64,000 nucleotides of DNA from sequence record KJ019143.1. One strand, 5' to 3'. Made by a program: the position numbers and the translations under genes. This document shows positions 27,226-54,506 of the stretch, in pieces (positions within the stretch are counted from its first letter, which is position 1; each line of letters opens with the position of its first letter). Under the pieces are notes generated by a model, which worked only from the letters and a program-made list of their open reading frames with translations, did not search any database and was not told the DNA's origin.

Positions 27226-27284
27226 TGTGACAGTCGACAAACTGGCACAGGGGGGTTGGCAAACCCCCTTTTTTGTGCTATAAT
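27226..27284 (+). promoter_or_regulatory. First copy: palindrome + hairpin terminator overlapping sigma70-like promoter
   Basis: GGGGGG-TTGGCAAA-CCCCC-TTTTTT; -35 TTGGCA 27256-27261; TG-C-TATAAT 27279-27284. Confidence 0.85.
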
Positions 27285-27317
27285 AACAGGGTAGTCAAAC
27301 AGAGAGGTTAGGTTCTA

Positions 27318-27668
27318 GTGGGTTTCCTGAAGTCTCTGTTTGCTACTGCCTTGGTGGGTATTGTTGGTGTGGTGTCTCCCGCCGAGGCAAGTGTAGGTGG
27401 CAATATGTCTCCAGTCGTAGAGGGTATGTGTATAAAGTACACACCCTTTGGTGATTTGCCCTGTAAGATTAGAGTATACGATAGTGAAGAACTAGTGTAT
27501 ATTACAGATGGTCATAATACTATGACATATACCAAGCACCCATTCATACCATATGCGTGGACAATGTATGTGAATGAACAACGGATATCTAATATGTTAT
27601 GCTCCCTAGATAAGTATAACTTCTCTTGTTTCACCTCAATCCAATTTGTTCCTGATTATGAAAACTAA
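27318..27668 (+). CDS. Hypothetical exported protein
   Basis: Signal peptide ending PAEA; first gene after element. Confidence 0.65.
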   Translation: MGFLKSLFATALVGIVGVVSPAEASVGGNMSPVVEGMCIKYTPFGDLPCKIRVYDSEELVYITDGHNTMTYTKHPFIPYAWTMYVNEQRISNMLCSLDKYNFSCFTSIQFVPDYEN

Positions 27669-27990
27669 ATCATTGATGCTCACCAGTTTGATGGTGGCAA
27701 CGATAACCGCATCACCTGTCATGGCGTACGGATATCGCCAACCATACTATCAACAACCCCCAGTTGTTATTCAACAGCCAGCACCTGTTATCATTCAACA
27801 ACCAAGACCAAGTACCCTAGAAACTGTTTTGGGTATTGCAGTTATTGGTGCAGGTTTATACTGGAATAGTCCAGCATATCAGAACGATCATGGATATTAT
27901 AATGGAAATAGAAACCACCATCACAACCAATACCAAGGTGGCAAAACATATGTAATTTGTAATGATTACGGACGGAGGTATTACTGCTGA
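27646..27990 (+). CDS. Hypothetical exported protein
   Basis: Signal peptide ending VMA, QQPPVVIQQP repeat, one TM. Confidence 0.65.
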   Translation: MFLIMKTKSLMLTSLMVATITASPVMAYGYRQPYYQQPPVVIQQPAPVIIQQPRPSTLETVLGIAVIGAGLYWNSPAYQNDHGYYNGNRNHHHNQYQGGKTYVICNDYGRRYYC

Positions 27991-28199
27991 TGGATTTTGT
28001 GGCATTTATGATTGATAAGGAAAACGCCTTATCACTGATACAATCACTTCACGAATCTGCCGATAAGTGTAGTAAAGATGGAAGACGAATTATGGAAGCA
28101 AACTATACCAAACTAGCAGACATGATGATGGAACAATACCTAGTATCAGAGAGTATCCACAGGAAGAGAAAAAGAAATAACGGAGATTATATCGGCTAA
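27990..28199 (+). CDS. Hypothetical protein
   Basis: Translationally coupled ORF. Confidence 0.6.
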   Translation: MDFVAFMIDKENALSLIQSLHESADKCSKDGRRIMEANYTKLADMMMEQYLVSESIHRKRKRNNGDYIG

Positions 28200-28771
28200 T
28201 GATTGACTATCTTACCATCCCTAATAGCTTATCAGACAAACTTTGTGACGACATCATTCACAAGTTTGACAGTGATGATAGAGTTGATTATGGTAAAATT
28301 AATATGGGAGATGTTGATACTGAGGTCAAAAGATGTAAAGAGTTGTTCATATCAATCCTAGATAACTGGCGAGATCTTGACAATCAGGTATTCAATGCGT
28401 CGGTGAAGGGGTTAAGTCAATACCGTGAGTACATTAATGAGTTATACGATGCCGATTATCTTCTAGGATCAGATAATTCTGATCAAGGTTACCGGGTAAA
28501 GAGATACGATATTGGTGAAGATTACTTTCATTGGCATCATGATCTACGCATAGATGAAAACCGTAGGATGAGATCAGTTGCCTTCATATGGTATCTAAAT
28601 GATGTGGAAGAGGGTGGTGAAACAGAATTTAGTAATGGTCTAAAGATACGTCCAGAGAAAGGTAAACTACTTCTATTTCCATCTACATGGAACAACGTAC
28701 ACAGAGGGAATACACCAATAAGTAATACGAAGTATGCTATTACTAGTTTCCTCTATTCCTCCTACGATTAG
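28199..28771 (+). CDS. 2OG-Fe(II) oxygenase
   Basis: FHWHHD, RSVAFIWYLNDVEEGGETEF, FPSTWNNVHRG. Confidence 0.92.
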   Translation: MIDYLTIPNSLSDKLCDDIIHKFDSDDRVDYGKINMGDVDTEVKRCKELFISILDNWRDLDNQVFNASVKGLSQYREYINELYDADYLLGSDNSDQGYRVKRYDIGEDYFHWHHDLRIDENRRMRSVAFIWYLNDVEEGGETEFSNGLKIRPEKGKLLLFPSTWNNVHRGNTPISNTKYAITSFLYSSYD

Positions 28772-28800
28772 GTGATATATACTAAGTATGGGATACTTCA

Positions 28801-29355
28801 GTGACAAAGGGTTATCGAATCAGGGGAGACTTTATTGCAAGTCTCATTAAACAACACGACTGTAAGATTGGTTATGAAATTGGGGTATCCAATGGTGCAA
28901 CTTTTGGTAAGATCTTAAAGAAATGTGATAATATTGAGTGGCATGGTGTAGATCCATGGGTTGTATGTTCCGAGTATGATAAACGCCCCAATGGTAAGGG
29001 TAAGTGGAATCATGATGGTAACTATAAGAAAGTTCAGGAGATTGTTAGTAAGTATCCAAAGCGTGCATATACCCACCGCATGACCTCTGTAGAGGCTGCA
29101 AAGGAGGTAGAGGATAGAAGTATTGATATTATCTTTATAGACGGTCTGCACACCTACGAGGGGGTGAAGGAAGATCTAGAGGCTTGGGTGCCAAAGATCA
29201 AAATAGGTGGTATAATCTCTGGACATGACTATAAAGGTATGAAGAGACATGAGGGTGTGACTATACGAGTGAATGAAGTATTTGGTGAAGAAAACATTAC
29301 TACTGGTCCAGATGTGACCTGGTGGTTATACAAAACGGAGGAACACGATGACTGA
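28801..29355 (+). CDS. Class I SAM-dependent methyltransferase (Methyltransf_24-like)
   Basis: YEIGVSNGAT, HGVDPW, IDIIFIDGLHTYEGVKEDL, GGIISGHDY. Confidence 0.9.
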   Translation: MTKGYRIRGDFIASLIKQHDCKIGYEIGVSNGATFGKILKKCDNIEWHGVDPWVVCSEYDKRPNGKGKWNHDGNYKKVQEIVSKYPKRAYTHRMTSVEAAKEVEDRSIDIIFIDGLHTYEGVKEDLEAWVPKIKIGGIISGHDYKGMKRHEGVTIRVNEVFGEENITTGPDVTWWLYKTEEHDD

Positions 29356-30109
29356 GGGTTATGTTGTTATTGCACTTGGCGATAAGTATGTTCAACTCGC
29401 CAAGAACTTTGAAGATACACTAAGACAAAACGGTGACAATCGTCCTGTTCATGTTGTCACTGAAGACATGATTGATAAGGATAATGATAAGTACAGGGAC
29501 TGTGATGTTCCCAACGAAAGGTATAACTGCTACCCCAAACTTCACTTCAATGAGTATGCGATATTTGATCATAGTATCCTAATCGATGCCGATGTTCTGT
29601 GCGTAGGTGATACCCAACACGTTTGGGATATGTGTAAAGAACAGGAACAGTTTATTCTTCACCGTGGGTGGGGACAAGTTACTAAATGGAATAGAGAACT
29701 ACAGAAGAAAGTGTGGGACGTTCATGGGTTCGTACCTCCTCGCATTCACGGAGCTTTCTGTTATCTAAGGAAGGCAGATATCAATGAAGACTTCTTTGAA
29801 TTTATCCAAAATAATGTGTGGTTTCAGTATACTGAATGGTGTACGGAAGATGTCAAAGCAAGACATCACAGGTTAAGTAGATCAGACCAGGTGATATATG
29901 CTATTGGTTATGGTAAGTTTGATCTCATGCCCTGTCAGTTAATGGAAGTCCCTATTATGACTCATATATTGACAGCGGCACACGTTAATCCTCCATACGA
30001 TAGAATCACTTTTAAGGATCAAATTGGACCCGATTTACAACATCCAGTGGCATTTGCCCATATCGAACAACTATTTCAGGAGAGCACCCCAGAAAGTTTT
30101 CTAAGGTGA
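29348..30109 (+). CDS. Glycosyltransferase (GT-A, GT8-like)
   Basis: YPKL, ILIDADVL DxD motif, SDQVIY. Confidence 0.7.
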   Translation: MTEGYVVIALGDKYVQLAKNFEDTLRQNGDNRPVHVVTEDMIDKDNDKYRDCDVPNERYNCYPKLHFNEYAIFDHSILIDADVLCVGDTQHVWDMCKEQEQFILHRGWGQVTKWNRELQKKVWDVHGFVPPRIHGAFCYLRKADINEDFFEFIQNNVWFQYTEWCTEDVKARHHRLSRSDQVIYAIGYGKFDLMPCQLMEVPIMTHILTAAHVNPPYDRITFKDQIGPDLQHPVAFAHIEQLFQESTPESFLR

Positions 30110-30189
30110 CAGTCCACAAACTGGCACACAGGGCTTGGCAACCCTCCAAAAAGGTGCTATACTATCCAAGTAACCAAAGGAAATGATTT

Positions 30190-30411
30190 ATGAAACCAGC
30201 AGAAATTCTCTACGAAATGCAATCCATTCGTAAAGTCTGGCATAATAATAATTTCGTTATCAGTCCCGAACTAAACCGTCGCTATTGTGAACTTCTTAAA
30301 CTCCGCCGTGAACGAGTTTCTCAATTCTATAAAGAGGGAAGGGTCGCTACAGGATCACAGACCCCCGACCTCAAAGCCCGAGAAGCCGCAAGACAAGCCG
30401 AGGTTGGTTGA
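30190..30411 (+). CDS. Hypothetical protein
   Basis: Follows element copy 30105 and AAAGGA SD. Confidence 0.72.
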   Translation: MKPAEILYEMQSIRKVWHNNNFVISPELNRRYCELLKLRRERVSQFYKEGRVATGSQTPDLKAREAARQAEVG

Positions 30412-30415
30412 GCCT

Positions 30416-30655
30416 ATGCAGGAACTTCTAGATACTTTCTATACAACTCCCTATGGTGATTTTGCCATTAGAAAGACTCGTTTCGGTGTTCATACCTCAT
30501 ATGATCGAGAGGGAACCGATTTGGTGACAGGTTTAGAGTGGATTGACGTATTCACCACCACACCTTGTCACCTACAATGGGAGAAGGAGGGTTACAAACC
30601 CCCCGAAGGTACAGTTCAAGCAACCTATGATAGTGTAGTCTCTGGAAAACTCTAA
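30416..30655 (+). CDS. Hypothetical protein
   Basis: ATG 30416 avoids overlap; ends YDSVVSGKL. Confidence 0.68.
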   Translation: MQELLDTFYTTPYGDFAIRKTRFGVHTSYDREGTDLVTGLEWIDVFTTTPCHLQWEKEGYKPPEGTVQATYDSVVSGKL

Positions 30656-31002
30656 TGGAAGACCGAAAATCACAACTATACAGCATCATGTATGATGCCA
30701 TCAGTGAATTAACTGAGCATGAGAGTGCTGAGGATATCTTTGACAATATTGTAGAGTATTTTGCTCTACGTGTTGAAGAAGCCCGTACTGAGGTTGATAC
30801 TTACACGGATATGTTAAACGTATTCCGCAAAGACAACCCAGTGAGAGACGTTCCTAGTGCAGATCCATACAAGAGAACTGAATGGGAACACGCATTTGGT
30901 GATATGGATGACATCAATCAAACATACATGCCATCAAACCAACACATCTGGAACGAGTTTCTTAAGAATATCAAATTCACGGACAATCAAGATACTAAAT
31001 AA
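30655..31002 (+). CDS. Hypothetical protein
   Basis: Coupled TAATG start, 115 aa. Confidence 0.7.
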   Translation: MEDRKSQLYSIMYDAISELTEHESAEDIFDNIVEYFALRVEEARTEVDTYTDMLNVFRKDNPVRDVPSADPYKRTEWEHAFGDMDDINQTYMPSNQHIWNEFLKNIKFTDNQDTK

Positions 31003-31022
31003 ACACTATCAGGAGAAAAGAG

Positions 31023-31220
31023 ATGACTACTGACCCAAACGATAAGTACGCTAAGTTCAAAGTACCATTTGGCACTAATGAACATCACGAAGATGATGAA
31101 TGGGATCCCACAACTGAGGGTAAAATCTCTGATTGGCACAACCGACATCAAGATAAACTCTTAGATGAGTTTTGTGACACTCACCCAGGCGCACCCCAGT
31201 GTAAGGTGTTTGACGATTAA
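31023..31220 (+). CDS. Small protein with CP12-like C-terminal motif
   Basis: FCDTHPGAPQCKVFDD matches CP12 C-x8-C-x2-[YF]DD; TAAATA at 30996-31001. Confidence 0.62.
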   Translation: MTTDPNDKYAKFKVPFGTNEHHEDDEWDPTTEGKISDWHNRHQDKLLDEFCDTHPGAPQCKVFDD

Positions 31221-31290
31221 CAAAGTGGCACAAGACCACTTGACAGTACCACATTATTAGGTTACAGTACATTTGTTCAAGAGGTTTCTC

Positions 31291-31461
31291 ATGACTACCG
31301 TTGTTGATTCAGAGGTTATCTTTGCTGACGCTTTCAGTGAAGATGGTATAGACTACGGAACTGGTTATTATGTAACTAAGTTCTATAGCAATGGTATGAC
31401 CGACCTATTTGGACCATACAATTTTGAGGAAGACGCCCTCAATCTTGCCACTGTTTATTGA
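31291..31461 (+). CDS. Hypothetical protein
   Basis: GAGG SD before ATG 31291, after TTGACA promoter. Confidence 0.6.
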   Translation: MTTVVDSEVIFADAFSEDGIDYGTGYYVTKFYSNGMTDLFGPYNFEEDALNLATVY

Positions 31462-31636
31462 TTCCTTCCTTTTTATTATGACTTTTGACACCTACGAAGA
31501 CGAAAGTATCTTCACTATTCTCGGTATTGCCGAAGAAGGTGAAGAAGAAACAGAAAACCCCTATTCCACTGAGGATACTAAAACACTAAAAGAATATGGC
31601 TATTGATTTCTCGTTCATTCTAGGTTTAGTTTTCAT

Positions 31637-31966
31637 TTGGTTGGGACTAAATATCCGTATAGTGAGAGAGGTGGAATAGTGGATTTCAGGGTAACAGTAA
31701 GAACACACACCGGGGCAGTTAGAGTTGTCGAGGTGAGCAACATGCCGAACGAGGAGGCAGCCAGAGCGGAAGCTGTTGGTATGACTTTCGGTAGGGTTCT
31801 GCAGGTTGAGTGTTTAGATGAGATCCCAGAACAATCCAAACCTAAAAAGAAAAGAGGACCAGTTCAAGAGATTGAACGAGAACTTAGACCAGGTGAAACC
31901 GAAACAATTGTAACAGGTTACAATAGCAACCCGTTAGCAGTGTTCTTCACTTTAGATGTTTTTTAG
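31637..31966 (+). CDS. Hypothetical protein
   Basis: 109-aa ORF, start uncertain (GTG 31679 possible). Confidence 0.55.
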   Translation: MVGTKYPYSERGGIVDFRVTVRTHTGAVRVVEVSNMPNEEAARAEAVGMTFGRVLQVECLDEIPEQSKPKKKRGPVQEIERELRPGETETIVTGYNSNPLAVFFTLDVF

Positions 31967-32019
31967 GGGTTGACACACCCCTTTTTTTGTGCTATACTTA
32001 TACCAATCGCAGGAGATCA

Positions 32020-32286: not shown

Positions 32287-32533
32287 ACTATATACTACAG
32301 ACAATTATTCAGGTACAATGAACCTAACTGAACATCAAAAGATTCAACTCTCACAATTTATTCATGAGTCGTTCTCTACATTCTATGAGGAGGAACTAAA
32401 GTTTCAAGTAGAAACTCTAAAAGATGATGATAAGTTGGATTGGACTTATACAATCACACCAAGAGACTCAGGGGAGATTTATGATAAGGTTCAGGAATTA
32501 TTCACACTGGAAAGGCGTGTGACAGTAGAATAA
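32276..32533 (+). CDS. Hypothetical protein
   Basis: Ends RRVTVE* inside element 32518. Confidence 0.62.
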   Translation: MMSKLYTTDNYSGTMNLTEHQKIQLSQFIHESFSTFYEEELKFQVETLKDDDKLDWTYTITPRDSGEIYDKVQELFTLERRVTVE

Positions 32534-32599
32534 GTGACACAAGGGGGGTTGGCAAACCCCCTTTTTGCTGCCATAATATACTCATACACACAAAGACCA

Positions 32600-32728
32600 A
32601 TGAACGTCCCCAACTGGCAGAAACACTCCAAGAAAGACCAGAAGGGTCGCGGAGTGAGCAAGGGTCAGATGAGAGCCCGCAAACAGGCTCTACGTGCCCT
32701 AAAGGCAAAGCTCCTTGTGACAGTCTAG
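32600..32728 (+). CDS. Small basic hypothetical protein
   Basis: MNVPNWQKHSKK...LLVTV*, single gene between two elements. Confidence 0.65.
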   Translation: MNVPNWQKHSKKDQKGRGVSKGQMRARKQALRALKAKLLVTV

Positions 32729-32798
32729 GAAGTGGCACAAGCCCCCTAGGCAAGACCCCCAAACCCTGCTATACTAAACACATACAAAGGAAACCACC

Positions 32799-35892: not shown

Positions 35893-36297
35893 ATGAATAA
35901 GAACAAGCACAATGAGACTGTAGGATCTACAGTAGAAAGATCAGACGAGAGGATCAAAGACACTGGGGAGGTATTCACTCCCCTAGAACTGTGTCGTGAG
36001 ATGGTGAACGAGATCCCCGAATCTACCCTACAAGATCCCAACTCCACCTTTTTAGATAATTCTGCTGGCTGTGGTAACTTCCTCATCGCCCTCAGGGACC
36101 GGCTATTGGAATATCATGAGTTATCACATATCGTAGACAATATGATCTACTGTGTGGAACTTATGGAGGACAACCATAGGGAAATATGTAAGACAATGGG
36201 TGTATCTACCGATCATCCACACTATGTAAGGGCAAATGCACTGGAATACGATTATAGCTTCGGCAACCCCGTTGGGTTGGAAGGTTTCTTCGTGTGA
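35893..36297 (+). CDS. Short N6-adenine DNA methyltransferase-like protein (SAM-binding half only)
   Basis: TGEVFTP, FLDNSAGCGNFL, VELMEDN; no NPPY motif; stop inside element 36293. Confidence 0.8.
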   Translation: MNKNKHNETVGSTVERSDERIKDTGEVFTPLELCREMVNEIPESTLQDPNSTFLDNSAGCGNFLIALRDRLLEYHELSHIVDNMIYCVELMEDNHREICKTMGVSTDHPHYVRANALEYDYSFGNPVGLEGFFV

Positions 36298-36374
36298 CAC
36301 CTGAATAACTGGCACAAGGGGGGTAGGCACCCCCCTTTTTTTGTGCTATACTACATTCATACCAAACCAATACT

Positions 36375-37046: not shown

Positions 37047-37233
37047 CACCCGAAGAATTTGAAGAGAACGCAAGAATTATCACGGGTGACCCAACATGGT
37101 CACTAGATGATGATGTGACAGTTGAGGAAGTGTCACAAGCCCCCTTGGCAAACCCCCTGAAACCTGTTATCTTATAGGAGTGGGAGAGATACACCCCCCA
37201 CACCAAACAAACCCCTTACAACCCCTTCTAAGT

Positions 37234-37591: not shown

Positions 37592-37616
37592 GGAGGGTTA
37601 TAAACCCTCCTTTTTT
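37592..37616 (+). terminator. Intrinsic terminator
   Basis: GGAGGGTT-ATA-AACCCTCC followed by T6. Confidence 0.85.
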
Positions 37617-37678
37617 ATGCCATGTTGCCACTACAGTGAATATGTGTTATAATACCTTTGTCAGGATCAGTAGGGATT

Positions 37679-38262: not shown

Positions 38263-38388
38263 TACACAAAACCACAAACCATTGTGCCAGTTGGACTAGT
38301 GGCACAACCCCCCTAGGCAAACCCACAGCAGTCGTGTATTGTATAGAAGTGGAGGGGAGACCCACCACACAAACCATTCACCAAAACA

Positions 38389-38580
38389 ATGACTGAGATT
38401 TACACACAACCAACATTCTCAGTTCATTACTCAAGTGATGAACACGATCAAATCTTAACTGAAACTGATTCTCTCTTTGAAGCAACTTGTGAGTACTACG
38501 AGATGATCGAAGATTTAGAAGATGATGAATGGATTTCAATCTACAATGAAGATTACAAAATCCTCAAGATTTCAGAATGA
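38389..38580 (+). CDS. Acidic hypothetical protein
   Basis: Flanked by 25-nt direct repeats. Confidence 0.62.
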   Translation: MTEIYTQPTFSVHYSSDEHDQILTETDSLFEATCEYYEMIEDLEDDEWISIYNEDYKILKISE

Positions 38581-38615
38581 GGGGAGACCCACCACACAAA
38601 CCACTAACTAACCAA

Positions 38616-38827: not shown

Positions 38828-39073
38828 ATGAACACAACAACAATCAACATTCTCAAATCACTGGACATTCTTTCCACTTTGATTCAGGCATTCTATGAGA
38901 TTGGATATGAACTTGGCACCTTCTATCGCAACCATCTTCATTCACATGTGAAGTTTGCTATTGAATACTCTGGTCTTGTTATTCGTGAGACCTATGGTAA
39001 CCGTCAAGAGTATTTCACAAAACTGAATAACTTCCGCAACCAAGCTGGTTCATACTTTGTCTATAGCGTGTGA
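38828..39073 (+). CDS. Hypothetical protein
   Basis: Stop is the TGA of element 39069. Confidence 0.65.
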   Translation: MNTTTINILKSLDILSTLIQAFYEIGYELGTFYRNHLHSHVKFAIEYSGLVIRETYGNRQEYFTKLNNFRNQAGSYFVYSV

Positions 39074-39153
39074 CAGTTGAGGAAGTGGCACAACCCCCCT
39101 TGGCAAACCCCTCAGGGGGTGCTATACTATATTCATACCAAAGGGAACCACCC

Positions 39154-39396
39154 ATGACTCACCTTTCCTTCACTCAGACCACACAAAACGCACTCCGTGA
39201 GTTAGATCGTTTAGAGGGAATTAAAGTTAGACTCGCTGGTCTGATTGTTGATCTTAAAGAGACACCATCAGCTAACTCTGAGACTTGGGTCAGGATGTAT
39301 ACTGACCGCCTCGTTTCTAATGTTATCCCAGCCATCAAGGAAGTTAAAGAATATCTCACTAGTCAGGATGCACTAGTTACCAAAGCATCCAACTGA
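39154..39396 (+). CDS. Hypothetical protein
   Basis: ATG after element leader; the ORF-track start at 39070 reads through the promoter. Confidence 0.68.
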   Translation: MTHLSFTQTTQNALRELDRLEGIKVRLAGLIVDLKETPSANSETWVRMYTDRLVSNVIPAIKEVKEYLTSQDALVTKASN

Positions 39397-39725: not shown

Positions 39726-39807
39726 GGTGTGACAGTTGGAGAAGTGGCACACGCTTCCCCGCAAACCACCCCACACCTGCTATACTATATTCATACCAAA
39801 GGAACCA

Positions 39808-41579: not shown

Positions 41580-41663
41580 TGTGACAGTTGAATAAGTGGC
41601 ACAAGGGGGGTTCGCAACCCTCCTTTTTTATGCTATACTATATTCATACCAAAGGAACCACAC

Positions 41664-41915
41664 ATGCCCAACCCTTTCGAGTCACTGACCCCTGAGGAGT
41701 TTTCGTTTCTATCTGACGCCTGTGCCCTCTCTGAGCAGATGTGGAGGGAGCGCTCCCGTTCTATAAAAGCAGGAGAGTCGCGTTGGTTTCTAGATGGTGA
41801 GCCCATGTTCACTGAAGAGGAATGTCGCTCAGAGATGAAACGATACCGTGAGTTACAGAAGCGAGTTTCCTGGTTCTCCCTCACACCAGAAGAGATGGAG
41901 CGTGTGACAGTCTAG
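41664..41915 (+). CDS. Hypothetical protein
   Basis: Single-gene cassette ending ERVTV* in element. Confidence 0.68.
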   Translation: MPNPFESLTPEEFSFLSDACALSEQMWRERSRSIKAGESRWFLDGEPMFTEEECRSEMKRYRELQKRVSWFSLTPEEMERVTV

Positions 41916-41984
41916 AAACTGGCACAAGCCCCCTAGGCAAACCCCTCCTTTTCTGCTATACTATTCACATACAGACAAAACACT

Positions 41985-42890: not shown

Positions 42891-43084
42891 TGATTGACTT
42901 CGATACTCTAACCCACGAAGAACTAGAGAGACTATCTGATGACTGTGAAGACTTTCTTCTTCATAGAAATATACCTCTAAGGTCACATTCCTATGAGAAT
43001 ATCATCAGACATGCTATCTTGGAAGGATACCAACTCTCTCGGTATCCTGGTGTGACACCTCAGAAACTGGCACAAGACCCCTAG
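42890..43084 (+). CDS. Hypothetical protein
   Basis: Reads through element 43051. Confidence 0.6.
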   Translation: MIDFDTLTHEELERLSDDCEDFLLHRNIPLRSHSYENIIRHAILEGYQLSRYPGVTPQKLAQDP

Positions 43085-43134
43085 ACAGGGACCCCAAACC
43101 CTGATATACTACATTCATACCAAACAAACAACCC

Positions 43135-45050: not shown

Positions 45051-45260
45051 ATGTCTTCACCATCAGCATTCACACCAGCATTAGGTCTAGAAGTTGAATA
45101 CAGGGGATTTGTGGGTTATATCAAGTTTATAGATGAAGAATATTTAACAGTGTGTGTGAAGAAGAAAGAGCACCAAATGTTTGGTGATGTTTGTATGGTT
45201 GTGTATCCAAGTCAGTGGGAACACATTAAACTAATGGGCGGACCTCACAGAGACCGATAG
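45051..45260 (+). CDS. Hypothetical protein (SH3-like beta pattern)
   Basis: GLEVEYRGFVGYIKFIDEEYLTVCV; stop overlaps element 45258. Confidence 0.65.
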   Translation: MSSPSAFTPALGLEVEYRGFVGYIKFIDEEYLTVCVKKKEHQMFGDVCMVVYPSQWEHIKLMGGPHRDR

Positions 45261-45344
45261 GACAGCTGAGGAAGTGGCACAAGGGGGCTAGGCAAGCCCC
45301 CTTTGTCGTGCTATACTATATTCATACCAAAGGGAACCACCCCC

Positions 45345-45559: not shown

Positions 45560-45736
45560 ATGTTCAAACTTCAACTCAAGTGGCAGAAAGAAGGTGAGTG
45601 GATTGATACAGTATACGCTCCTACAGAATACGCAACAGCTTTCTTTCGTTGGAGACAGTACCAAGAGCTTTGGGGTGATACTCACACCTATCGCCTCCTC
45701 GATGTGACACCTCAGGAAGTGGCACAAGCCTCCTAG
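45560..45736 (+). CDS. Small hypothetical protein (58 aa, not in ORF track)
   Basis: Single-gene cassette MFKLQLKWQKEGEW..., reads into element 45703. Confidence 0.6.
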   Translation: MFKLQLKWQKEGEWIDTVYAPTEYATAFFRWRQYQELWGDTHTYRLLDVTPQEVAQAS

Positions 45737-45785
45737 GCAAACCACCCCACACCTGCTATACTAAACACATACCAAACAAAGAACC

Positions 45786-46067
45786 ATGAATTTCAAGTCC
45801 TTCCTCCTTTCCTCACTCATCGTCACCACCGGGCTAGTAGCCTCAGCACCAGGAGCCAAAGCCGCTGAATGTTTCATGGGTGATGGCTATCGGGTTTGTA
45901 TGGAGAGCTTAGGCATGAATCGTTGGGAAGTATCCTTCGAGAACAACCATGGCTCAGAGTTTATGGAGGTTCAGTGTATTGGCAAGAGTGTGAGTGATTG
46001 GACATCACGAGGTGATTTGAGTCAGTCTGAGGCAAACTATCTCGCAGAACAGTTCTGTTCCTGGTAA
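45786..46067 (+). CDS. Exported 4-Cys protein (paralog of 49473-49790)
   Basis: Signal peptide ending AKA; C..GYRVC..G.E..VQC..W.SRG..A..AEQFC. Confidence 0.75.
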   Translation: MNFKSFLLSSLIVTTGLVASAPGAKAAECFMGDGYRVCMESLGMNRWEVSFENNHGSEFMEVQCIGKSVSDWTSRGDLSQSEANYLAEQFCSW

Positions 46068-46100: not shown

Positions 46101-46259
46101 ATGTTTGTATCCTTCACTGAAATCCAAGACTACATTCGCGAAGATCAATACACATATAGTGAGCGCCAGTTCCGCTCACGCAAGTATAAAAAGAACGAAC
46201 GTCGTTATCAGCGTCGTCAGAAGCAACAACAAAGAGAACGCAACTACGATAGCGTGTGA
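46101..46259 (+). CDS. Small Arg/Gln-rich protein (52 aa, not in ORF track)
   Basis: MFVSFTEIQDYIRED..RRYQRRQKQQQRERNYDSV*, stop in element 46255. Confidence 0.58.
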   Translation: MFVSFTEIQDYIREDQYTYSERQFRSRKYKKNERRYQRRQKQQQRERNYDSV

Positions 46260-46338
46260 CAGTTGGAGAAGTGGCACACACTTCTCCGCAAACCCCTCAG
46301 GGGGTGCTATACTATATTCATACCAAAGGGAACCACCC

Positions 46339-46563
46339 ATGACCACCACCACTCCAAACCTCTACAACGAAGCTATCCGTCGTTTGGCTGACGGGTTCTC
46401 CTCAGAGTTCGCTGAGTTCTGTGCAGGAGACGAGAGGGTTCACGAGATCATGATGGACCTCGCTAGTGAGTTCGTAGAAACCAATATCCCTGTAGTGAGT
46501 GAGGATAGCCAGCACGACGTGGCTTCTGAGCTCCTCATGAGTATCACAGTCACCAAGGTGTGA
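46339..46563 (+). CDS. Hypothetical protein
   Basis: Single-gene cassette; stop is TGA of element 46559. Confidence 0.7.
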   Translation: MTTTTPNLYNEAIRRLADGFSSEFAEFCAGDERVHEIMMDLASEFVETNIPVVSEDSQHDVASELLMSITVTKV

Positions 46564-46643
46564 CAGTCTAGGAACTGGCACAAGGGGGGTTGGCAACACC
46601 CCCCAAAACCTCTATACTAAACACATACCAAACAACCCAGACC

Positions 46644-48071: not shown

Positions 48072-48191
48072 CCACCCCCATACCCCCAGACAGAGCAAAA
48101 CTCATAACCATGTGACAGTTGGATTAGTGGCACACGAAAGCCCGCAAACCCCTCAGGGGGTGCTATACTAAACCCATACACAACAAAACCA

Positions 48192-48548
48192 ATGATCTAC
48201 TCTATCACTCACCAGGAGACTGGCATTACGTATTCAGTTAGCACTGAAGATATTCGTAAAGTTGCTAACATCCTCCCAATGAACTCTGAGGAGTTGGCTG
48301 ACATGATGACAGGTCTGAATTGTGACTCATATGCAGATATGGCAGAAGAGTATATTGAAGAAGTTGCGGATATGTATGATGATGTGGCACTGGCAACTGA
48401 TAAGTTTATGAGTAGCACTGATGAAAGGGCACAAACAACGTTCGCCTACTATCGTATCATGAACTGTGATAACTCTGATGAAGTGACTACACAATATTGG
48501 CGTGATGACGCTATGGCTATGATCACTGACTACAATGATCGCAAATGA
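48192..48548 (+). CDS. Acidic hypothetical protein
   Basis: First gene of cassette. Confidence 0.68.
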   Translation: MIYSITHQETGITYSVSTEDIRKVANILPMNSEELADMMTGLNCDSYADMAEEYIEEVADMYDDVALATDKFMSSTDERAQTTFAYYRIMNCDNSDEVTTQYWRDDAMAMITDYNDRK

Positions 48549-48856
48549 AACGCTACGGACTTTATTGGCTGAGAGCTATCACCCTAGGTGCTGGTCTAAA
48601 CTTTGTTTTGACTGGTTACCTTATGGGCCACCAAAAGTGGAAGTTTCAACATGCAGCTCCACTCTCAGCGTTTATCTGTGTGAATCTATCGTATGTGGCG
48701 GATCGTCTCATCTTTGGTGATAAGAAGGAACCTGAAGATTTAGATCCAGATACTATTGTTATATCAACCCCACATTGTTGCCCCGTATGTTCAGAGTATC
48801 CTTGCACTTGTGACAGTTGGGAAAGTGGCACAACCCCCCTAGGCAACACCCTCTGA
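48545..48856 (+). CDS. Hypothetical membrane protein
   Basis: Two hydrophobic segments, CCPVCSEYPCTC; reads into element 48809. Confidence 0.58.
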   Translation: MKRYGLYWLRAITLGAGLNFVLTGYLMGHQKWKFQHAAPLSAFICVNLSYVADRLIFGDKKEPEDLDPDTIVISTPHCCPVCSEYPCTCDSWESGTTPLGNTL

Positions 48857-48892
48857 ACCTGCTATACTAAACACATACCAAAGGAACCAACC

Positions 48893-49119: not shown

Positions 49120-49404
49120 ATGACACGCACTCCAATGACAGTCACCCTCAAGCGTAGCGACTGGGAATGTTATACAGACACCCCCGATACTATCATCGAA
49201 ACTATCAACTCATACTTCTCTTATGTGTTATCAACTAAAGATAACGCGTTTGATGCACAGTCTGAGATATTCAAGTTTCTGAATATGTTTAGTGAGTTTG
49301 GGTTTATGGATAGTGAGTGCCTAGAATGTGCAACTAGAGTCATCAACAGATATTTCGATTCATACCTCTCCCGATGGAGCCAGGTGGGTGATGTGACAGT
49401 CTAA
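49120..49404 (+). CDS. Hypothetical protein
   Basis: Ends DVTV* in element 49392. Confidence 0.65.
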   Translation: MTRTPMTVTLKRSDWECYTDTPDTIIETINSYFSYVLSTKDNAFDAQSEIFKFLNMFSEFGFMDSECLECATRVINRYFDSYLSRWSQVGDVTV

Positions 49405-49472
49405 GAAGTGGCACACGCTTCTCCGCAAACCCCTCAGGGGGTGCTATACTATATTCATACCAAAGGAACCAA

Positions 49473-49790
49473 ATGAATTTCAGAACACTAGCACTCACCA
49501 CCACCCTGGCTCTCTCCACTGTCCTAGGTGGTTTGGCTCCTGAAGCTAAGTCAGCTGACTTTTGTGACAACATCCCCGGCAACTCGGGATACGTTTGTGT
49601 TACCATGGGTCTCTGGTTCGACTTGGTTGAGGCAGACATACCCGCCTTTGGTGGTAAAGAGTCATTACACATCACCTGTGACAATGGCTGGTCATATCGA
49701 TCTAATGGTAACTGGAACAAAGACGCCGCTTCCCTTGTGGCTAAGGAATACTGTGAAGGTGCTGGCTGGAACAGCCACTCCGAGGTGTGA
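49473..49790 (+). CDS. Exported 4-Cys protein (paralog of 45786-46067)
   Basis: Signal peptide ending AKS; C..GYVC..GKE..ITC..W.YRSNG..A..AKEYC. Confidence 0.75.
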   Translation: MNFRTLALTTTLALSTVLGGLAPEAKSADFCDNIPGNSGYVCVTMGLWFDLVEADIPAFGGKESLHITCDNGWSYRSNGNWNKDAASLVAKEYCEGAGWNSHSEV

Positions 49791-49869
49791 CAGTCTAGGA
49801 AGTGGCACAAGCCCCCTAGGCAAGACCCCTCGGGTCTGCTATACTATATTCATACCAAACAAAGAAACC

Positions 49870-50136
49870 ATGTTCCCACACCTCCACATCTCTGAATCAA
49901 ACCTCGGACCTCACACCTCCATGTTTTTCAAAGTATCATCACAACCACAAGATGAGTGGCAGAATGGCATTTTCCATAACTCACCTTATGGCATCTTTCA
50001 CCTTCATTCTGAGAAAGGTGTTTATAAGTTGGAACTATCTTCCTCAGGTTTGAATACACCTAAGTTTCGCAAGTGTAAGTGTGAAGATGAACTTACCGCA
50101 CTCACTAAGATTCGTCAGTGGATGGATAAGTTCTGA
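49870..50136 (+). CDS. Phage hypothetical protein
   Basis: SSQPQDEWQNGIFHNSPYGIF..FRK; ATG after element leader. Confidence 0.72.
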   Translation: MFPHLHISESNLGPHTSMFFKVSSQPQDEWQNGIFHNSPYGIFHLHSEKGVYKLELSSSGLNTPKFRKCKCEDELTALTKIRQWMDKF

Positions 50137-50171
50137 TATTATCTAACACAAACCACTCACAACAAACTATC

Positions 50172-50345
50172 ATGAACCGACTAGAACTACTGACCCAACG
50201 TGAACAACTGATGGAGAGGATTGACTCTATCTGTGATGAATTCTTTTATAAGAACTATAATGGAGATACATCAGAAGCAGACGAATTAGTTCGTATTCTA
50301 TGTGATGCTGTTTGTGAAACCATAGACCCAGCGGGCATGGTGTGA
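50172..50345 (+). CDS. Small hypothetical protein (57 aa, not in ORF track)
   Basis: MNRLELLTQREQLMERID..LCDAVCE; stop in element 50341. Confidence 0.62.
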   Translation: MNRLELLTQREQLMERIDSICDEFFYKNYNGDTSEADELVRILCDAVCETIDPAGMV

Positions 50346-50424
50346 CAGTTGGAGAAGTGGCACACGCTTCTCCGCAAGACCCGCCTCACCTGCTATACTA
50401 TATTCATACCAAAGGAAACCGACC

Positions 50425-50688
50425 ATGTTCCAAGTCTGTACCGAAGACGCTCTAGATCACCGCTACACAATTGATGAGTTTGAGACACTGGAAGAAGCCC
50501 AATCTTGTTATAACGAGTGTGTGAAGGTTGGAGCTGAGGGTTATGAGATTTCGGTTGAGTTAGAGGAAATCATTGGCGATCATGATGATTACGTTTCCAT
50601 CGAGTTCACCGAGTGGTTTACACAAGAGAGTTGGGAGGAAGCTCATCCCTGGAATGAGAAGGAAGGAGTATGGGAAAACATAGACTGA
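50425..50688 (+). CDS. Acidic hypothetical protein
   Basis: Single-gene cassette. Confidence 0.68.
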   Translation: MFQVCTEDALDHRYTIDEFETLEEAQSCYNECVKVGAEGYEISVELEEIIGDHDDYVSIEFTEWFTQESWEEAHPWNEKEGVWENID

Positions 50689-50775
50689 TGTGACAGTTGG
50701 AGAAGTGGCACAAGCCCCCTAGGCAAACCCCTCCATACCTGCTATACTAAACACATACCAAACAAAGGAAACCAC

Positions 50776-51117
50776 ATGACCACCACCCAAACCAAAACCG
50801 AGTTCCTCACCGAGGCAATGATCGAACAGGTGAACAACCTCTGGAAGGTTTATAACGTGGAGTCAGGTCACACCATCACCCCACTTCTTAAGTATGAAGT
50901 GGCTAAGAAGTACATCAAGGTCTATCGTTTAGACGTTGTGAATGGTGAGATTCGTGACGGTCGTTCAGTGTTTATGTTTATCGATAAGGAGACTGGTGCA
51001 GTTCTGAAACCAGCCTCATGGAGAGCACCCGCTAAGGGTATCCGGTTCTACATTGAGTCGTTGGCTGAGAATCCTGAGCTGGTTGATCAGTATGGTAGTT
51101 TCCTCTACCGTCGCTGA
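50776..51117 (+). CDS. Phage hypothetical protein
   Basis: KKYIKVY..RSVFMFIDKETGAVLKPASWRAPAKGIRF. Confidence 0.78.
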   Translation: MTTTQTKTEFLTEAMIEQVNNLWKVYNVESGHTITPLLKYEVAKKYIKVYRLDVVNGEIRDGRSVFMFIDKETGAVLKPASWRAPAKGIRFYIESLAENPELVDQYGSFLYRR

Positions 51118-51199
51118 TGTGACAGCCACCAAGGTGGCACAGGGGGGCTAGGCAGCTCCCCTTCTTTATGCTATACTATATTCATACCAAAGGACCCCG

Positions 51200-52453
51200 A
51201 TGACCCTCACTCTCCGCCCCCACCAACTAGAAGCACTTCAGGTGATGGCTGAGACTCGTCTTGGTCAGATATTAGTTCCTACTGGTGGTGGTAAGACATT
51301 GATTGCCATCATGGACGTTGTGAGGACTCTAGAGAACGCAGGAACCCCTCAGACCATCGTTGTGGTGGCACCTAGGATATTGTTAGCCCAGCAACTCTGT
51401 AGTGAGTATATGGAGGTTCTGAGCGATAGGTTCGCCAACGTTATCCCCGCCCATATTCACTCAGGTCATACACCTCACTTTTCTACCACTAATATTCAGA
51501 AGATCCATCTTTTCGAGAAGATGATGGATACCGCCAACCTCCACCGCATATATTTCACCACATACAACTCACTTCCACGTTTAGCAGAAGCAGGTGTAAG
51601 TGTCGATACTATTATGTTCGACGAAGCTCATAACTCCACTCGTAATGACTTCTATCCCGCTACCAAGTATTTCTCACAGACCGCTAGTCGTTGTTACTAC
51701 TTTACAGCAACTCCCCGTCACTCAGTAACATCCAAGAGACACGGAATGAACGAGTCTGATGTATACGGACAGGTTATCTACAATGTTCCTGCCCCTACAC
51801 TTGTACAGGGTGGGTTTATCATCCCTCCTCAGGTTCGTGTTAAAGAGATGGAGTTCGTAGCTAAACATGAGCTCATCTCACAACGTGACACAAACCACCT
51901 CATCTCTTGTATTGATGACAACAACACGAGCAAAGTTCTAGTTTGTGCTAAGTCAGTCAAACAGATCATGCGTATGTTTAGTGAGACCGATATCAGCCAA
52001 CAACTTGATGATCGTGGTTTCTCCTATATGTACATCTCAGCTAAGACTGGTGGTGTTATCAATGGTAAGAAAGTATCACGTACTATGTTCTTCGATACTC
52101 TAAACGAGTGGGGTAAGGATAACAACAAGAAGTTCATTGTTCTTCATCATTCTATTCTCTCTGAGGGTATCAATGTAAGTGGTCTAGAGTCCGCTATCTT
52201 CTTACGTACTATGGACCACATTACTATCTCCCAAACGATTGGACGTGTCATTCGATTACATAAGGATGATGCTAAAGCTATGAGAGATGGTTCGATTCGC
52301 CCCGGTGATCTTAACTCCTATACTAAGTCCTTTGGTTTGTGTATTGTTCCAGTTTATTCTAAAACACAACAAACAGTTGCTAAGTCTCTTCAGGCAGTTG
52401 TTAATACCGTCTTTGTGGAAGGTGAAGCAGCAACCACAGTTGTGAGGCGTTAG
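51200..52453 (+). CDS. Superfamily 2 helicase (DExH, type III restriction Res-like)
   Basis: VPTGGGKT Walker A, FDEAH, FTATP, ILSEGINV, QTIGRVIR. Confidence 0.92.
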   Translation: MTLTLRPHQLEALQVMAETRLGQILVPTGGGKTLIAIMDVVRTLENAGTPQTIVVVAPRILLAQQLCSEYMEVLSDRFANVIPAHIHSGHTPHFSTTNIQKIHLFEKMMDTANLHRIYFTTYNSLPRLAEAGVSVDTIMFDEAHNSTRNDFYPATKYFSQTASRCYYFTATPRHSVTSKRHGMNESDVYGQVIYNVPAPTLVQGGFIIPPQVRVKEMEFVAKHELISQRDTNHLISCIDDNNTSKVLVCAKSVKQIMRMFSETDISQQLDDRGFSYMYISAKTGGVINGKKVSRTMFFDTLNEWGKDNNKKFIVLHHSILSEGINVSGLESAIFLRTMDHITISQTIGRVIRLHKDDAKAMRDGSIRPGDLNSYTKSFGLCIVPVYSKTQQTVAKSLQAVVNTVFVEGEAATTVVRR

Positions 52454-52561
52454 TATGAATTATCAAAACCAAGCTCTTGTGATACTTCTAGGTCTAATGT
52501 TCATAGCTGGTATTAACGTACTTCACTATGAACAACAATGGCAATGTAGGATGCATCAAAC

Positions 52562-53272
52562 CTATTGTTTTGTTTCTGAATAATACCATAAGTATCCTTT
52601 CCAACGCGAACCCCATTTGATAGAAGTACAAATACCCTTCCCACGATCCTCCTCATTAAAGGATCTCATCGCATCACTAATAGAGTCAAACACGGGAGTA
52701 ACATGACCAGTCTTATGAACTCCATAGACTTGTTTCTTATTCTTAGCGTGTTTATGAATCCACCATTTATAACCATATGCCGAACCCTCTCTTGTGATAC
52801 TTCTCCTGATATTTGATGGCCTACCATTCACAAACTCAGCGGCAGCAACCCAACCATGAAAGGTCTTAATCTTACCCGTTTCCAAGCACCTACACTTGAT
52901 GACGTTCTTATCATGTTTCTTAGGTTTCTTCTTTCGTTGATAACCCCATCTCCTATCCCCGTTATGATATGACTCTTTATTATTCAGCTTCCTAGTCTTA
53001 TGTTCTAACACCAAATTGTTATACTCAGGGTTATACTTATTCATCCAATATTCCACTCGTTCAGTAAGCTTATTCTCATTCACTTCTTCTAGTATACGTA
53101 TAGTAAAGTCATCGGAGTTATAGTAAGATAAGGCATTCGACAGAGGAGTATTTTCCTCCTTATGATTTTCCAATATCCCAGCCCAAACTTTATTCAGGGG
53201 AAGCGTATCATAACCGATGTATTTGTGAGAGGTTTGTCTATTCAAGATGATGTAGATGTTTGTGATGCTCAC
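52562..53272 (-). CDS. GIY-YIG homing endonuclease-like protein with NUMOD-type DNA-binding repeats
   Basis: NIY-x10-YIG, FTIRILEE, YNPEYN; FHGWVAAAEFV..AYGYKW and FDSISDAMR..WKGYLW. Confidence 0.8.
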   Translation of the reverse strand: MSITNIYIILNRQTSHKYIGYDTLPLNKVWAGILENHKEENTPLSNALSYYNSDDFTIRILEEVNENKLTERVEYWMNKYNPEYNNLVLEHKTRKLNNKESYHNGDRRWGYQRKKKPKKHDKNVIKCRCLETGKIKTFHGWVAAAEFVNGRPSNIRRSITREGSAYGYKWWIHKHAKNKKQVYGVHKTGHVTPVFDSISDAMRSFNEEDRGKGICTSIKWGSRWKGYLWYYSETKQ

Positions 53273-53351
53273 GGGAAATAGTCTCTATTCTGGTTGTATA
53301 TATAAACATTATCTTTTTTTATCACATGTGTTTGTTTATCTCCCTATTGGA

Positions 53352-53644
53352 TGTTATAATAGAAAGGAAGAGATCAACGTATATAACCAATGGAATTACC
53401 TAGGTAAGGATGAATAGAATAACCAATAGATTAACCTAGTAAGAAGTGATCTAATAGAAGGTAATCATATAGAGGAAGGTGAATAGAAAGCCCTATAGAA
53501 AGACCCAATAGAATGTAATCTAATCCATTGTAATCACCTATAGGATAGTATCATATAACGAGGTCTTTACAGCTCACTAAGCTCCTCCTAAACTCCACTG
53601 CCCGTTGCATATAAAGATCCATAGAAAGGTCTCTGCCCGTTGCA
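53352..53644. repeat. Non-coding tract with ~9 ATAGA(A) repeats and a 12-bp direct repeat
   Basis: ATAGA near 53359, 53414, 53426, 53454, 53469, 53483, 53495, 53508, 53621; CTGCCCGTTGCA at 53598-53609 and 53633-53644. Confidence 0.75.
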
Positions 53645-53807
53645 ACCTAAGCCCACCCTACCACGGGATTCCATTTTTGCCAAGGGATCTCCGAAAAACT
53701 TAATATTTCCGAGACACCCCAGACACCCACGGAACTGGCACAAACCCCCTTGGCAAACCCCCCGAAATGGCATATACTATATTCATACAAACAAAGGGAA
53801 CCGACCC

Positions 53808-54041
53808 ATGGAATTCATCCAAACTGACTACCCCGCTAACATGGCTCCCAATGTTATGGAGAGGAACTATGGTCGGGGTATCATCCTGACTCAGGTCAAT
53901 GAGGATGGTGTCATTCCATTCTCAGTATTCAATTTCAAAAAAGAGGATTGGAACTGGGGAGCTGACTACTACATGACCGAGCATAACTTCTATACACTAG
54001 AGGAGGCAGAGGCGGTAGTGACTCAGCTCGTAGCCAGCTGA
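53808..54041 (+). CDS. Hypothetical protein
   Basis: Single-gene cassette. Confidence 0.68.
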   Translation: MEFIQTDYPANMAPNVMERNYGRGIILTQVNEDGVIPFSVFNFKKEDWNWGADYYMTEHNFYTLEEAEAVVTQLVAS

Positions 54042-54114
54042 ACCACTGGCACATGGGGGCTAGGCACAGCCCCCTCTATACCCTATACTATATTCATACC
54101 AAAGGGAACACCCC

Positions 54115-54273
54115 ATGACCAAAGCAACTCAGAGACCTTCCACCCAGAGCCGTTACACCAGCCAGGTAGCCCAGGACCGTAAGGCAGCGGCACTCCAGAG
54201 GGCAGAGGAGCGTCGCCTCACGGGTTCTGCCGACGTGGATCAGGTGAACCGCCTCTACACTGTGACACTCTGA
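54115..54273 (+). CDS. Small hypothetical protein (52 aa)
   Basis: Single-gene cassette ending YTVTL* in element 54261. Confidence 0.58.
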   Translation: MTKATQRPSTQSRYTSQVAQDRKAAALQRAEERRLTGSADVDQVNRLYTVTL

Positions 54274-54344
54274 TAACTGGTACACAGGGGGTTGACAATA
54301 CACCCCCATGGCTCTATACTACACTCATACACAGATCCAACCCC

Positions 54345-54506
54345 ATGAACAGCCAACAGCATCTAGACTCCCTGGTATCCTCACTAGCCCAGGACGGTTG
54401 CCAAGAGATCGCAGTTATCAAGCTCCCTTCCCAAGCGAAGAGGAACCACAAGACCCTGTTCAGCCCACCCAACCGTAAAGGACCCCGGGCTAAGGTTTCA
54501 GCCTAA
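54345..54506 (+). CDS. Small hypothetical protein (53 aa)
   Basis: MNSQQHLDSL..IKLPSQAKRNHK; first gene after last element. Confidence 0.58.
   Translation: MNSQQHLDSLVSSLAQDGCQEIAVIKLPSQAKRNHKTLFSPPNRKGPRAKVSA

Follow-up and report, generated by a model that had tools for sequence, protein, structure and literature searches.

Array organization and putative composite promoter elements

T4-like cyanophages are among the most abundant viruses of the ocean, and the small early genes clustered in their hypervariable blocks are assumed to serve host takeover and counter-defence. The window analysed here, a stretch of 64,000 nucleotides identical to bases 1-64000 of sequence record KJ019143.1, belongs to Synechococcus phage ACG-2014f isolate Syn7803C12, a T4-like cyanomyovirus (Kyanoviridae, Atlauavirus) with a genome of 224.5 kb. 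Between a tail-fibre-like gene ending at 27218 and the gp25/gp6 baseplate genes, which begin at 57836, lies an array of about 80 short open reading frames (ORFs), almost all of them on the + strand and almost all annotated as hypothetical, punctuated by composite promoter-like elements that share a 24-bp upstream dyad.

Scanning the window for the pattern TGTGACAST-N6-ASTGGCACA with up to three mismatches returned 26 sites on the + strand, against 0.19 expected from shuffled sequence; the 23 matches on the - strand are the same palindromes read back. Four further copies (39385, 45477, 53719 and 54030) retain only the right, promoter-proximal half together with the same downstream layout, and one unit, at 37592-37653, combines a terminator and a promoter with no palindrome. 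The array of palindromes described in an earlier note on this DNA is real, and its total of 31 units, one of them lacking the palindrome and all copies lying on the + strand, holds as given; the breakdown changes from the 27 full or near-full and three right-half copies counted there to 26 near-full and four right-half copies. Extending the scan to the rest of the genome and to relatives, as the note had proposed, gave 29 dyads in the genome, all on the + strand and 26 of them inside the 27-kb array, with the remaining three upstream of cobS, of a small ORF and of psbA, and located the same element type in other cyanomyoviruses.

An element measures about 85 bp and opens with the dyad (24-bp consensus TGTGMCASTT-N4-AASTGGCACA), followed after 6-7 nt by a weak -35 hexamer (TTGGCA, TAGGCA or CCGCAA), 17 nt later by a -10 box of the form (TGn)TATACT, and finally by an A/C-rich leader of some 20-25 nt, of which there are two types, carrying a ribosome-binding site (AAGGA or AAAG) and placing the ATG 20-30 nt past the -10 box. 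Counted from the predicted start, the dyad spans about -66 to -43, with its centre near -54, and stands 29-30 nt from the -10 box. An independent promoter scan, in which activity is predicted only, returned hexamer pairs with a spacer of exactly 17 nt and a TG before the -10 box in most cases, in agreement with the earlier description of the -35 distance, the spacing, the TG and the two shared leaders. Directly after the dyad, either over the -35 hexamer or in the spacer, 17 of the 30 elements have a strong G/C hairpin (-9.9 kcal/mol or lower) and the other 13 have none. The hairpin holds the -35 hexamer in its loop in some elements (GGGGGG-TTGGCA-AACCCCC) and lies within the spacer in others (CCCCTCAGGGGG), and in six it is followed by a T-run and scored as terminator-like by an independent scan. 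Some non-orthologous elements are 91% identical over 101 bp. Single annotated genes of about 42-113 amino acids (aa) fill 13 of the 29 inter-element intervals, much as the note's mention of many single-gene intervals had it. The array and its units are as follows.

27226-54344, + strand: early-gene hyperplastic array (putative), about 80 small ORFs punctuated by 30 composite promoter elements
27226-27317, + strand: element 1, full dyad, hairpin G6-TTGGCA-C5 with T-run (terminator-like), TATAAT
30105-30189, + strand: element 2, dyad with one mismatch
31209-31290, + strand: element 3, left arm degenerate (three mismatches), -35 TTGACA
32518-32599, + strand: element 4, dyad with T at position 20, terminator-like G/C hairpin with T-run, CATAAT
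32716-32798, + strand: element 5, full dyad
36293-36374, + strand: element 6, insertion hot spot (three inserts in relatives), terminator-like hairpin
37114-37233, + strand: element 7, symmetric dyad (T at position 20), TATCTT, long structured leader
37592-37653, + strand: unit without dyad, terminator hairpin and TTGCCA-17-TATAAT promoter
38283-38388, + strand: element 8, perfect-type dyad TGTGCCAGT...GGCACA, long structured leader, leader repeat at 38579-38600
39069-39153, + strand: element 9, left parent of the 2.8-kb deletion in isolate C19
39385-39473, + strand: element 10, right half only
39728-39807, + strand: element 11, CCGCAA-type, left parent of a cassette deletion in isolate C24
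39985-40068, + strand: element 12, right parent of the C24 cassette deletion
41580-41663, + strand: element 13, terminator-like hairpin, element alone missing in two relatives
41903-41984, + strand: element 14, right parent of the C19 2.8-kb deletion
43051-43134, + strand: element 15, near-full dyad
45258-45344, + strand: element 16, left arm degenerate, site of a 0.6-kb cassette insertion in C24
45477-45559, + strand: element 17, right half only (TGTCACA)
45703-45785, + strand: element 18, near-full dyad
46255-46338, + strand: element 19, spacer hairpin CCCCTCAGGGGG, 91% identical to element 9 over 101 bp
46559-46643, + strand: element 20, near-full dyad
48111-48191, + strand: element 21, missing along with gene 48192-48548 in several relatives
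48809-48892, + strand: element 22, near-full dyad
49392-49472, + strand: element 23, left border of a slot with three unrelated alleles among isolates
49786-49869, + strand: element 24, right border of the slot with three unrelated alleles
50341-50424, + strand: element 25, near-full dyad
50689-50775, + strand: element 26, slot taking two different inserts (0.30 kb and 0.24 kb) in relatives
51118-51199, + strand: element 27, terminator-like hairpin, upstream of a helicase gene that it is predicted to drive
53719-53807, + strand: element 28, right half only
54030-54114, + strand: element 29, right half only
54261-54344, + strand: element 30, -35 TTGACA, site of insertions of about 0.5 kb in three relatives

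Two details concern individual elements. The GenBank start of gene Syn7803C12_62 (39085, for a gene at 39085-39396) falls within element 9, and the ATG at 39154, past the leader, is the more plausible start. The long leaders of elements 7 and 8 contain a conserved hairpin of the GUGGAGGGGAGACCCACCAC type (37174-37233 and 38343-38388, with a further copy at 38579-38600), which has no match in Rfam; leaders of this type also appear in unrelated IMG/VR contigs, and the hairpin may be a 5' stabilising stem-loop.

Conservation and distribution of the element

Substitutions were counted position by position in 147 orthologous element pairs from eight sister isolates. Within the dyad the rate was 1.2% for the left arm, 2.0% for the right arm (nearly all of it at position 20) and 7.8% for the N6 centre, and over the rest of the element it was 8.8% in the linker, 5.7% in the -35 hexamer, 7.2% in the spacer, 0.34% in the -10 box and 1.0% in the leader, compared with 1.5-2.2% in flanking coding sequence. 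On these rates, the dyad arms, the -10 box and the leader are under purifying selection, and the nominal -35 hexamer and the spacer are unconstrained.

The same features recur well outside this species. The exact dyad was found in at least 120 IMG/VR stretches, where chance is estimated to produce only a few. Among the matches listed, nearly all sites are followed by a -10 box and an ATG, and when 164 sites were given an orientation from the gene that follows, 137 had 29-30 nt between the end of the dyad and the -10 box; in this set the promoter-proximal arm reads TGGCACA in 87%, the distal arm is TGTGA about as often as TGTGC, and the -35 region holds almost no information. Elements of the same type are present in phages S-SSM4, S-SSM7, S-SSM6a/b and S-PM2, and S-CAM7, which belongs to a different genus, has a variant proximal half-site. 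The earlier mention of such a motif in T4-like cyanophages is thereby borne out, the dyad being widespread upstream of -10 boxes in cyanomyoviruses from IMG/VR as well as in named phages. One candidate from S-PM2, a cited 'host-like early promoter' at 5322-5350, was set aside as it lacks the dyad; the adjacent gene p015 has a right-half copy.

The symmetry of the dyad is incomplete in an informative way. Among 114 unselected sites, the bases at positions 8 and 17 are identical in 74 and complementary in 24, so that the centre of the dyad, CAGT-N6-AGTG, is asymmetric; the pair is usually G,G or C,C, and the asymmetric centre can face the promoter either way round. This asymmetry could stem from the recognition mode of a binding factor or from shared descent of element subfamilies. 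Since the two positions mostly carry the same base, pairing is not what selection maintains, and the dyad behaves like a recognition site in duplex DNA.

Gene gain, loss and replacement among isolates

The array region was compared all-against-all among nine ACG-2014f isolates (Syn7803C12 and eight others), with duplicate events collapsed. The comparison yielded 22 independent indel or replacement events, 12 with both ends in elements, six with one end and four with neither. Elements make up 9.4% of the array. Their enrichment at breakpoints (P ~1e-5) holds even under a stricter null that confines breakpoints to gene boundaries, of which 30 out of about 80 carry an element. Where elements bound an event, the alignments on its two sides overlap by 49-83 bp, and two events lying outside full elements are still bounded by 20-32 bp direct repeats of leader-type sequence. 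The gene at 38389-38580, deleted in some relatives, is bracketed by the leader of element 8 and its repeat at 38579-38600.

Depending on the isolate, the slot at 36293 holds 3.5 kb encoding a methyltransferase and a helicase, 3.1 kb encoding a restriction-modification-like pair, or 1.0 kb with two small ORFs, each insert being flanked by copies of element 6, and the restriction-subunit-like gene and methyltransferase share about 50% protein identity with gp055/056 of S-CAM7. Cargo of a defence or counter-defence type is thus moving in and out of one promoter-bounded slot. Element 13 alone is absent from two relatives, in which the flanking genes overlap (ATGA), and this lone indel displays neither target-site duplications nor terminal inverted repeats.

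Cassette order is collinear across the nine isolates; relative to S-CAM7, 37 of 100 ORFs are common and their order is partly scrambled. At the scale of isolates, variation consists of indels and allele replacement at fixed slots, not of free shuffling. The earlier proposal of shufflable, self-expressing cassettes therefore survives in part: the elements do delimit units of gain, loss and replacement and the junctions are chimeric, but free shuffling is not what the nine isolates display. For the note, the proposal would have fallen if collinear order had come together with breakpoints unrelated to the element; the order is collinear, and the breakpoints are tied to the elements.

Junctions and recombination machinery

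Elements at the junctions are chimeras of two parental elements. In the cleanest case, the junction of the 2.8-kb deletion in isolate C19, the sequence matches the element at 39069 through the dyad centre and that at 41903 right after the 8-bp TGGCACAA, with zero inconsistent sites. The crossover intervals of the nine mapped junctions fall at element positions 10-19, 18-25, 43-48, 52-54 (twice), 54-80, about 63 and 66-96, with one ambiguous, and they lie in or beside the conserved blocks, which are the longest exact identities common to non-orthologous elements (median exact shared tract 12 bp; 20 bp or more in 92 of 435 pairs, mostly in the dyad or in the -10/leader block). Because the crossover points are scattered over the element, exchange appears to be homology-driven and not site-specific, and the suggestion that the palindrome itself is a recombination site is contradicted by intervals that extend from the palindrome to the leader.

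The 81 array proteins yielded no match to a recombinase or integrase family, nor does the annotation of the 224.5-kb genome list one, the whole proteome not having been scanned with hidden Markov models; this carries the earlier observation that no recombinase is visible beyond the window. A transposase is likewise missing among the 81 array proteins. Recombination genes that are annotated in the genome are UvsX, UvsY, UvsW and gp46/47.

Proposed mechanism

These observations are probably best explained by an early-promoter array of the promoter-early stem-loop (PeSL) type in a T4-like cyanomyovirus, with dyad promoter units and homology-driven exchange of cassettes between them. Each element would be a promoter read by the host RNA polymerase early in infection, as sequence and conservation suggest, and the dyad would be its upstream recognition module, most likely for a dimeric DNA-binding protein or for the alpha C-terminal domains of the polymerase, filling the role that a good -35 hexamer or an AT-rich UP element has elsewhere. 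The G/C hairpins may attenuate read-through from upstream units. Being dispersed in direct orientation, the elements supply short homologies, and ectopic exchange between them, as the comparison of isolates shows, deletes, inserts or replaces the genes in between, every exchange leaving a chimeric yet intact promoter before the next gene. Such exchange could proceed by general homologous or microhomology recombination, presumably with the phage-encoded UvsX, UvsY, UvsW and gp46/47, and would need no site-specific recombinase.

Several points weigh against this interpretation. Promoter activity, early timing and start sites are all deduced from the DNA, activation, repression and polymerase contact at the dyad cannot be told apart on that basis, and a dyad centre at about -54 corresponds to no classical class I or class II activator position. 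As to exchange, four events (two of them insertions of free-standing HNH endonuclease genes) have an element at neither end, several three-way parent comparisons leave 4-11 inconsistent sites, and the parents of the chimeras are reconstructed from present-day sequences. No cassette was transposed to a new slot among the nine isolates, and part of the excess of breakpoints at elements could come from selection that favours intact promoter-gene units.

A bolder version, which can be put forward only tentatively, is that the 24-bp dyad docks a factor, either a host protein or a phage protein delivered with the virion, that replaces -35 recognition at the early promoters of cyanomyoviruses, and that dyad and -10/leader together form a homology scaffold letting co-infecting cyanophages swap ready-to-express cassettes without a dedicated recombinase, possibly via mini-circles like those of PeSLs. 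A scan of bacterial genomes for the exact dyad consensus returned 37 matches, with about 35 expected by chance. About ten of the 37 are cyanobacterial, amounting to some five independent loci, and five are phage-like contigs in metagenome-assembled genomes; the cyanobacterial excess is modest and suggestive at most, and no site in a marine Synechococcus host was among the exact matches. The scan does not decide between a host and a phage factor. Two of the cyanobacterial settings may be recorded: in Nodularia and relatives a conserved exact dyad lies between convergent genes just downstream of purH, and in Cyanothece an exact dyad stands directly upstream of a TTGACA box before the gene of an exosortase-like membrane protein.

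Alternative explanations

What the dyad does can be read in other ways. The most serious competitor, still unlikely in our estimate, holds that it is the operator of a phage-made repressor that shuts early promoters at the early-to-middle switch and is no aid to initiation. Its presence on almost every early-type promoter would make coordinated control possible, its arms are under purifying selection, and T4-like cyanophages lack the AsiA/MotA system (PMC5780444). Set against this is the -35 region, which in the wider set of sites is essentially unconserved, so that something upstream must help to recruit the polymerase; a site ending at -43 would moreover leave the core promoter unoccluded, and no helix-turn-helix protein is found among the array proteins, the remaining proteome not having been scanned systematically. 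It is considerably less probable that the dyad forms an RNA or single-strand hairpin at the upstream gene's 3' end and acts there as a terminator, a stabiliser or an RNase site. The dyad does lie at or over the upstream stop codon, the TGA of TGTGA terminating several genes, and folding can give it a stem of as many as nine pairs. The fold, however, is weak (mean -4.5 kcal/mol, compared with -2.1 for shuffles), and pairing is not the conserved property, given the excess of identical over complementary bases at positions 8 and 17 (74 against 24) and the frequent A and G at positions 5 and 20. Copies with only the right half still belong to complete elements, and the fixed distance of 29-30 nt to the -10 box argues for a role in the promoter.

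Other readings concern the breakpoints. If these coincided with elements only through selection for whole promoter-gene units, the elements themselves being mechanistically idle, one would point out that indels surviving in compact phage genomes are mostly found at gene boundaries; yet the enrichment persists against the gene-boundary null, the flanking alignments overlap by tens of base pairs (49-83) at the elements, and the junction elements are chimeric for both parental elements, which together make this account improbable. Lower still stands an integron-like system, in which the palindrome would be an attC-like site for a site-specific recombinase encoded elsewhere and the cassettes would pass through excised circles. 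The single-gene units bounded by imperfect palindromes had given the earlier note this impression, two of the nine mapped crossovers do fall inside the palindrome, and one element is present or absent by itself. The crossover intervals nevertheless cover the whole 85-95 bp of the element, array proteins and genome annotation contain no integrase or recombinase family, each cassette has its own promoter, with the palindrome on the 5' promoter side of the unit at a fixed distance from the -10 box, and cassette order is collinear among isolates; many cyanomyoviruses, furthermore, keep the palindrome as single promoter-associated copies, for instance upstream of psbA and cobS. The integron-like layout has accordingly been abandoned. 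Equally hard to credit is the view of the element as a small selfish mobile unit, spread by transposition, whose promoter content is incidental. About 30 similar copies in one genome, a copy present or absent alone, and pairs 91% identical over 101 bp might recall such elements, but the lone indel has neither hallmark of transposition looked for (target-site duplications, terminal inverted repeats), no transposase was found in the array proteins, all copies share one strand and one register with the downstream start codon, and the -10 box and leader are the most constrained parts.

Two known site types were also tried and rejected. A sigma-54 promoter, which requires its GG and GC elements exactly 10 nt apart, fails on spacing, the GC in TGGCACA-N6-TTGGCA lying 3 nt too far downstream in comparison with TGGCAC-N5-TTGC; cyanobacteria are known to lack sigma-54. 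A CRP-type site (TGTGA-N6-TCACA, 16-bp core) does not fit a dyad whose TGTG and CACA are 16 nt apart and whose arms measure 9-10 bp. A paper on a phage MarR protein was put aside as not relevant, its subject being a podovirus.

Other features of the region and genome

The cargo of the array consists mostly of domains of unknown function or unknown proteins, the 81 array proteins each falling into a separate PHROG. Rfam and tRNA scans of the 64-kb window returned no matches. The cassette genes at 45786 and 46644 have similar N-termini (MNFK..LLLS) and may encode paralogous secreted or membrane proteins; their upstream elements, at 45703 and 46559, are 79% identical over 115 bp, and this similarity extends into the coding sequence. 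Immediately behind element 30, an ORF at 54345-54506 is absent from the annotation of the GenBank record. A 'cox1-i7'/HNH-type homing-endonuclease gene occupies 52562-53272 on the - strand and varies in length from 483 to 711 nt across isolates, and relatives carry insertions of free-standing HNH endonuclease genes at positions corresponding to 38119/38175 and 50127/50172, independently of promoter elements. Upstream of the array, tandem Gly/His-rich repeats in the tail-fibre-like gene (24594-24700; GGTGGCACAGGTGG...AATCACAATCACCCATCAGGTGGC) give rise to chance matches to the right-half motif.

Two loci outside the window deserve mention. KJ019143.1 encodes at 137505-138197 a 230-aa protein of the sigma-70 family in which Pfam recognises regions 2 and 4 (E = 4e-13 and 4e-7), present besides the T4-type late sigma factor gp55. 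The annotation at 120641-123657 splits the gp43 DNA polymerase into two ORFs, with two small ORFs between them; plasticity of the same gp43 locus in other T4-like phages is noted in the PeSL paper.

Comparison with known systems

PeSLs are cassettes of the T4-type phages RB49/phi1, T4/PST and KVP40/nt-1 (Arbiol 2010, PMC2839356; Comeau 2014, PMC4122927), in which an early promoter of the sigma-70 type is combined with polyG/polyC stem-loops, whose position varies, and is followed by a Shine-Dalgarno sequence and a start codon; exchange between neighbouring repeats gives rise to mini-circles. The earlier comparison with them proves apt for promoter, stem-loop, ribosome-binding site and start codon, clustering and breakpoints alike. 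Each repeat here has a predicted sigma-70-type -35/-10 pair (17-nt spacers, mostly extended TG); a stem-loop lies over the -35 hexamer or between -35 and -10 in 17 of the 30 elements (six with a T-run); and the 3' end provides the gene that follows with a ribosome-binding site and a start codon. As in PeSLs, the repeats cluster in hyperplastic regions upstream of ORFans, with 26 of 29 copies in 27 kb, and indel or replacement breakpoints between close relatives fall in the repeats, at both ends in 12 of 22 events, with chimeric junctions. The differences lie in the upstream part, which is AT-rich in PeSLs and here is replaced by the conserved dyad TGTGMCAST-N6-ASTGGCACA, in a weakly constrained -35 hexamer, in the cyanobacterial host, and in a strong stem-loop that is found in only about half of the copies. 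In a paper on the ORFanage of S-PM2, PeSLs were considered too sparse in that phage and unlikely to matter there (PMC4503421).

Resemblance to other systems is more partial. Integron attC arrays also line up mostly single-gene units in a common orientation, with imperfect palindromes between them, but they come with an adjacent tyrosine-recombinase integrase, here absent from the 81 array proteins and the genome annotation, their cassettes are promoterless and served by one common promoter, whereas every unit here has its own -35/-10 pair, their attC site is at the 3' end instead of being a 24-bp palindrome on the 5' side, and their recombination position is fixed, in contrast to crossovers from position 10 to position 96 of the element. 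CRP/FNR sites and UP elements are comparable in that a module upstream of the core promoter keeps a fixed distance to it, where alpha C-terminal domains or class I activators make contact, although the dyad differs from them in its arms of 9-10 bp, the 16 nt between TGTG and CACA, a composition that is not AT-rich and a centre near -54. In halovirus HF2, dispersed intergenic repeats are reported to be promoters (PMC8707807); that virus is archaeal and its motifs are AT-rich, unlike those described here.

Closest on the side of transcription is an element attributed to Doron et al. 2016 (ISME J), whose abstract reportedly describes a novel element controlling early genes that is abundant and conserved among T4-like cyanophages, and which is said not to be treated there as a recombination substrate. 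The 24-bp dyad is probably this element; like it, the dyad stands upstream of genes across T4-like cyanophages, here in at least 120 IMG/VR stretches besides the named phages. In a full-text literature search that did not take in Doron 2016 and Mann 2005, neither the dyad nor PeSLs in these genomes were described, and the literature searched contained no link between such an element and cassette exchange in cyanophages. Gregory 2016, the population-genomics study of these isolates, makes no mention of promoters or repeats.

If the proposed mechanism is right, ectopic recombination at a conserved promoter unit would provide a concrete route for the turnover of hypervariable gene blocks in a wild cyanophage population. 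The dyad, sharply bounded, supported by selection and kept at a fixed distance from the -10 box, would offer a defined target for an early-transcription factor, and it bears on how cyanophages that lack AsiA and MotA may direct early transcription. Since both PeSL shuffling and a cyanophage early element are already in the literature, known ideas are extended here and no new class is founded. The array is best filed, without a new category, as a cyanophage variant of PeSL-type promoter cassettes whose upstream module is a conserved, putatively protein-binding dyad.

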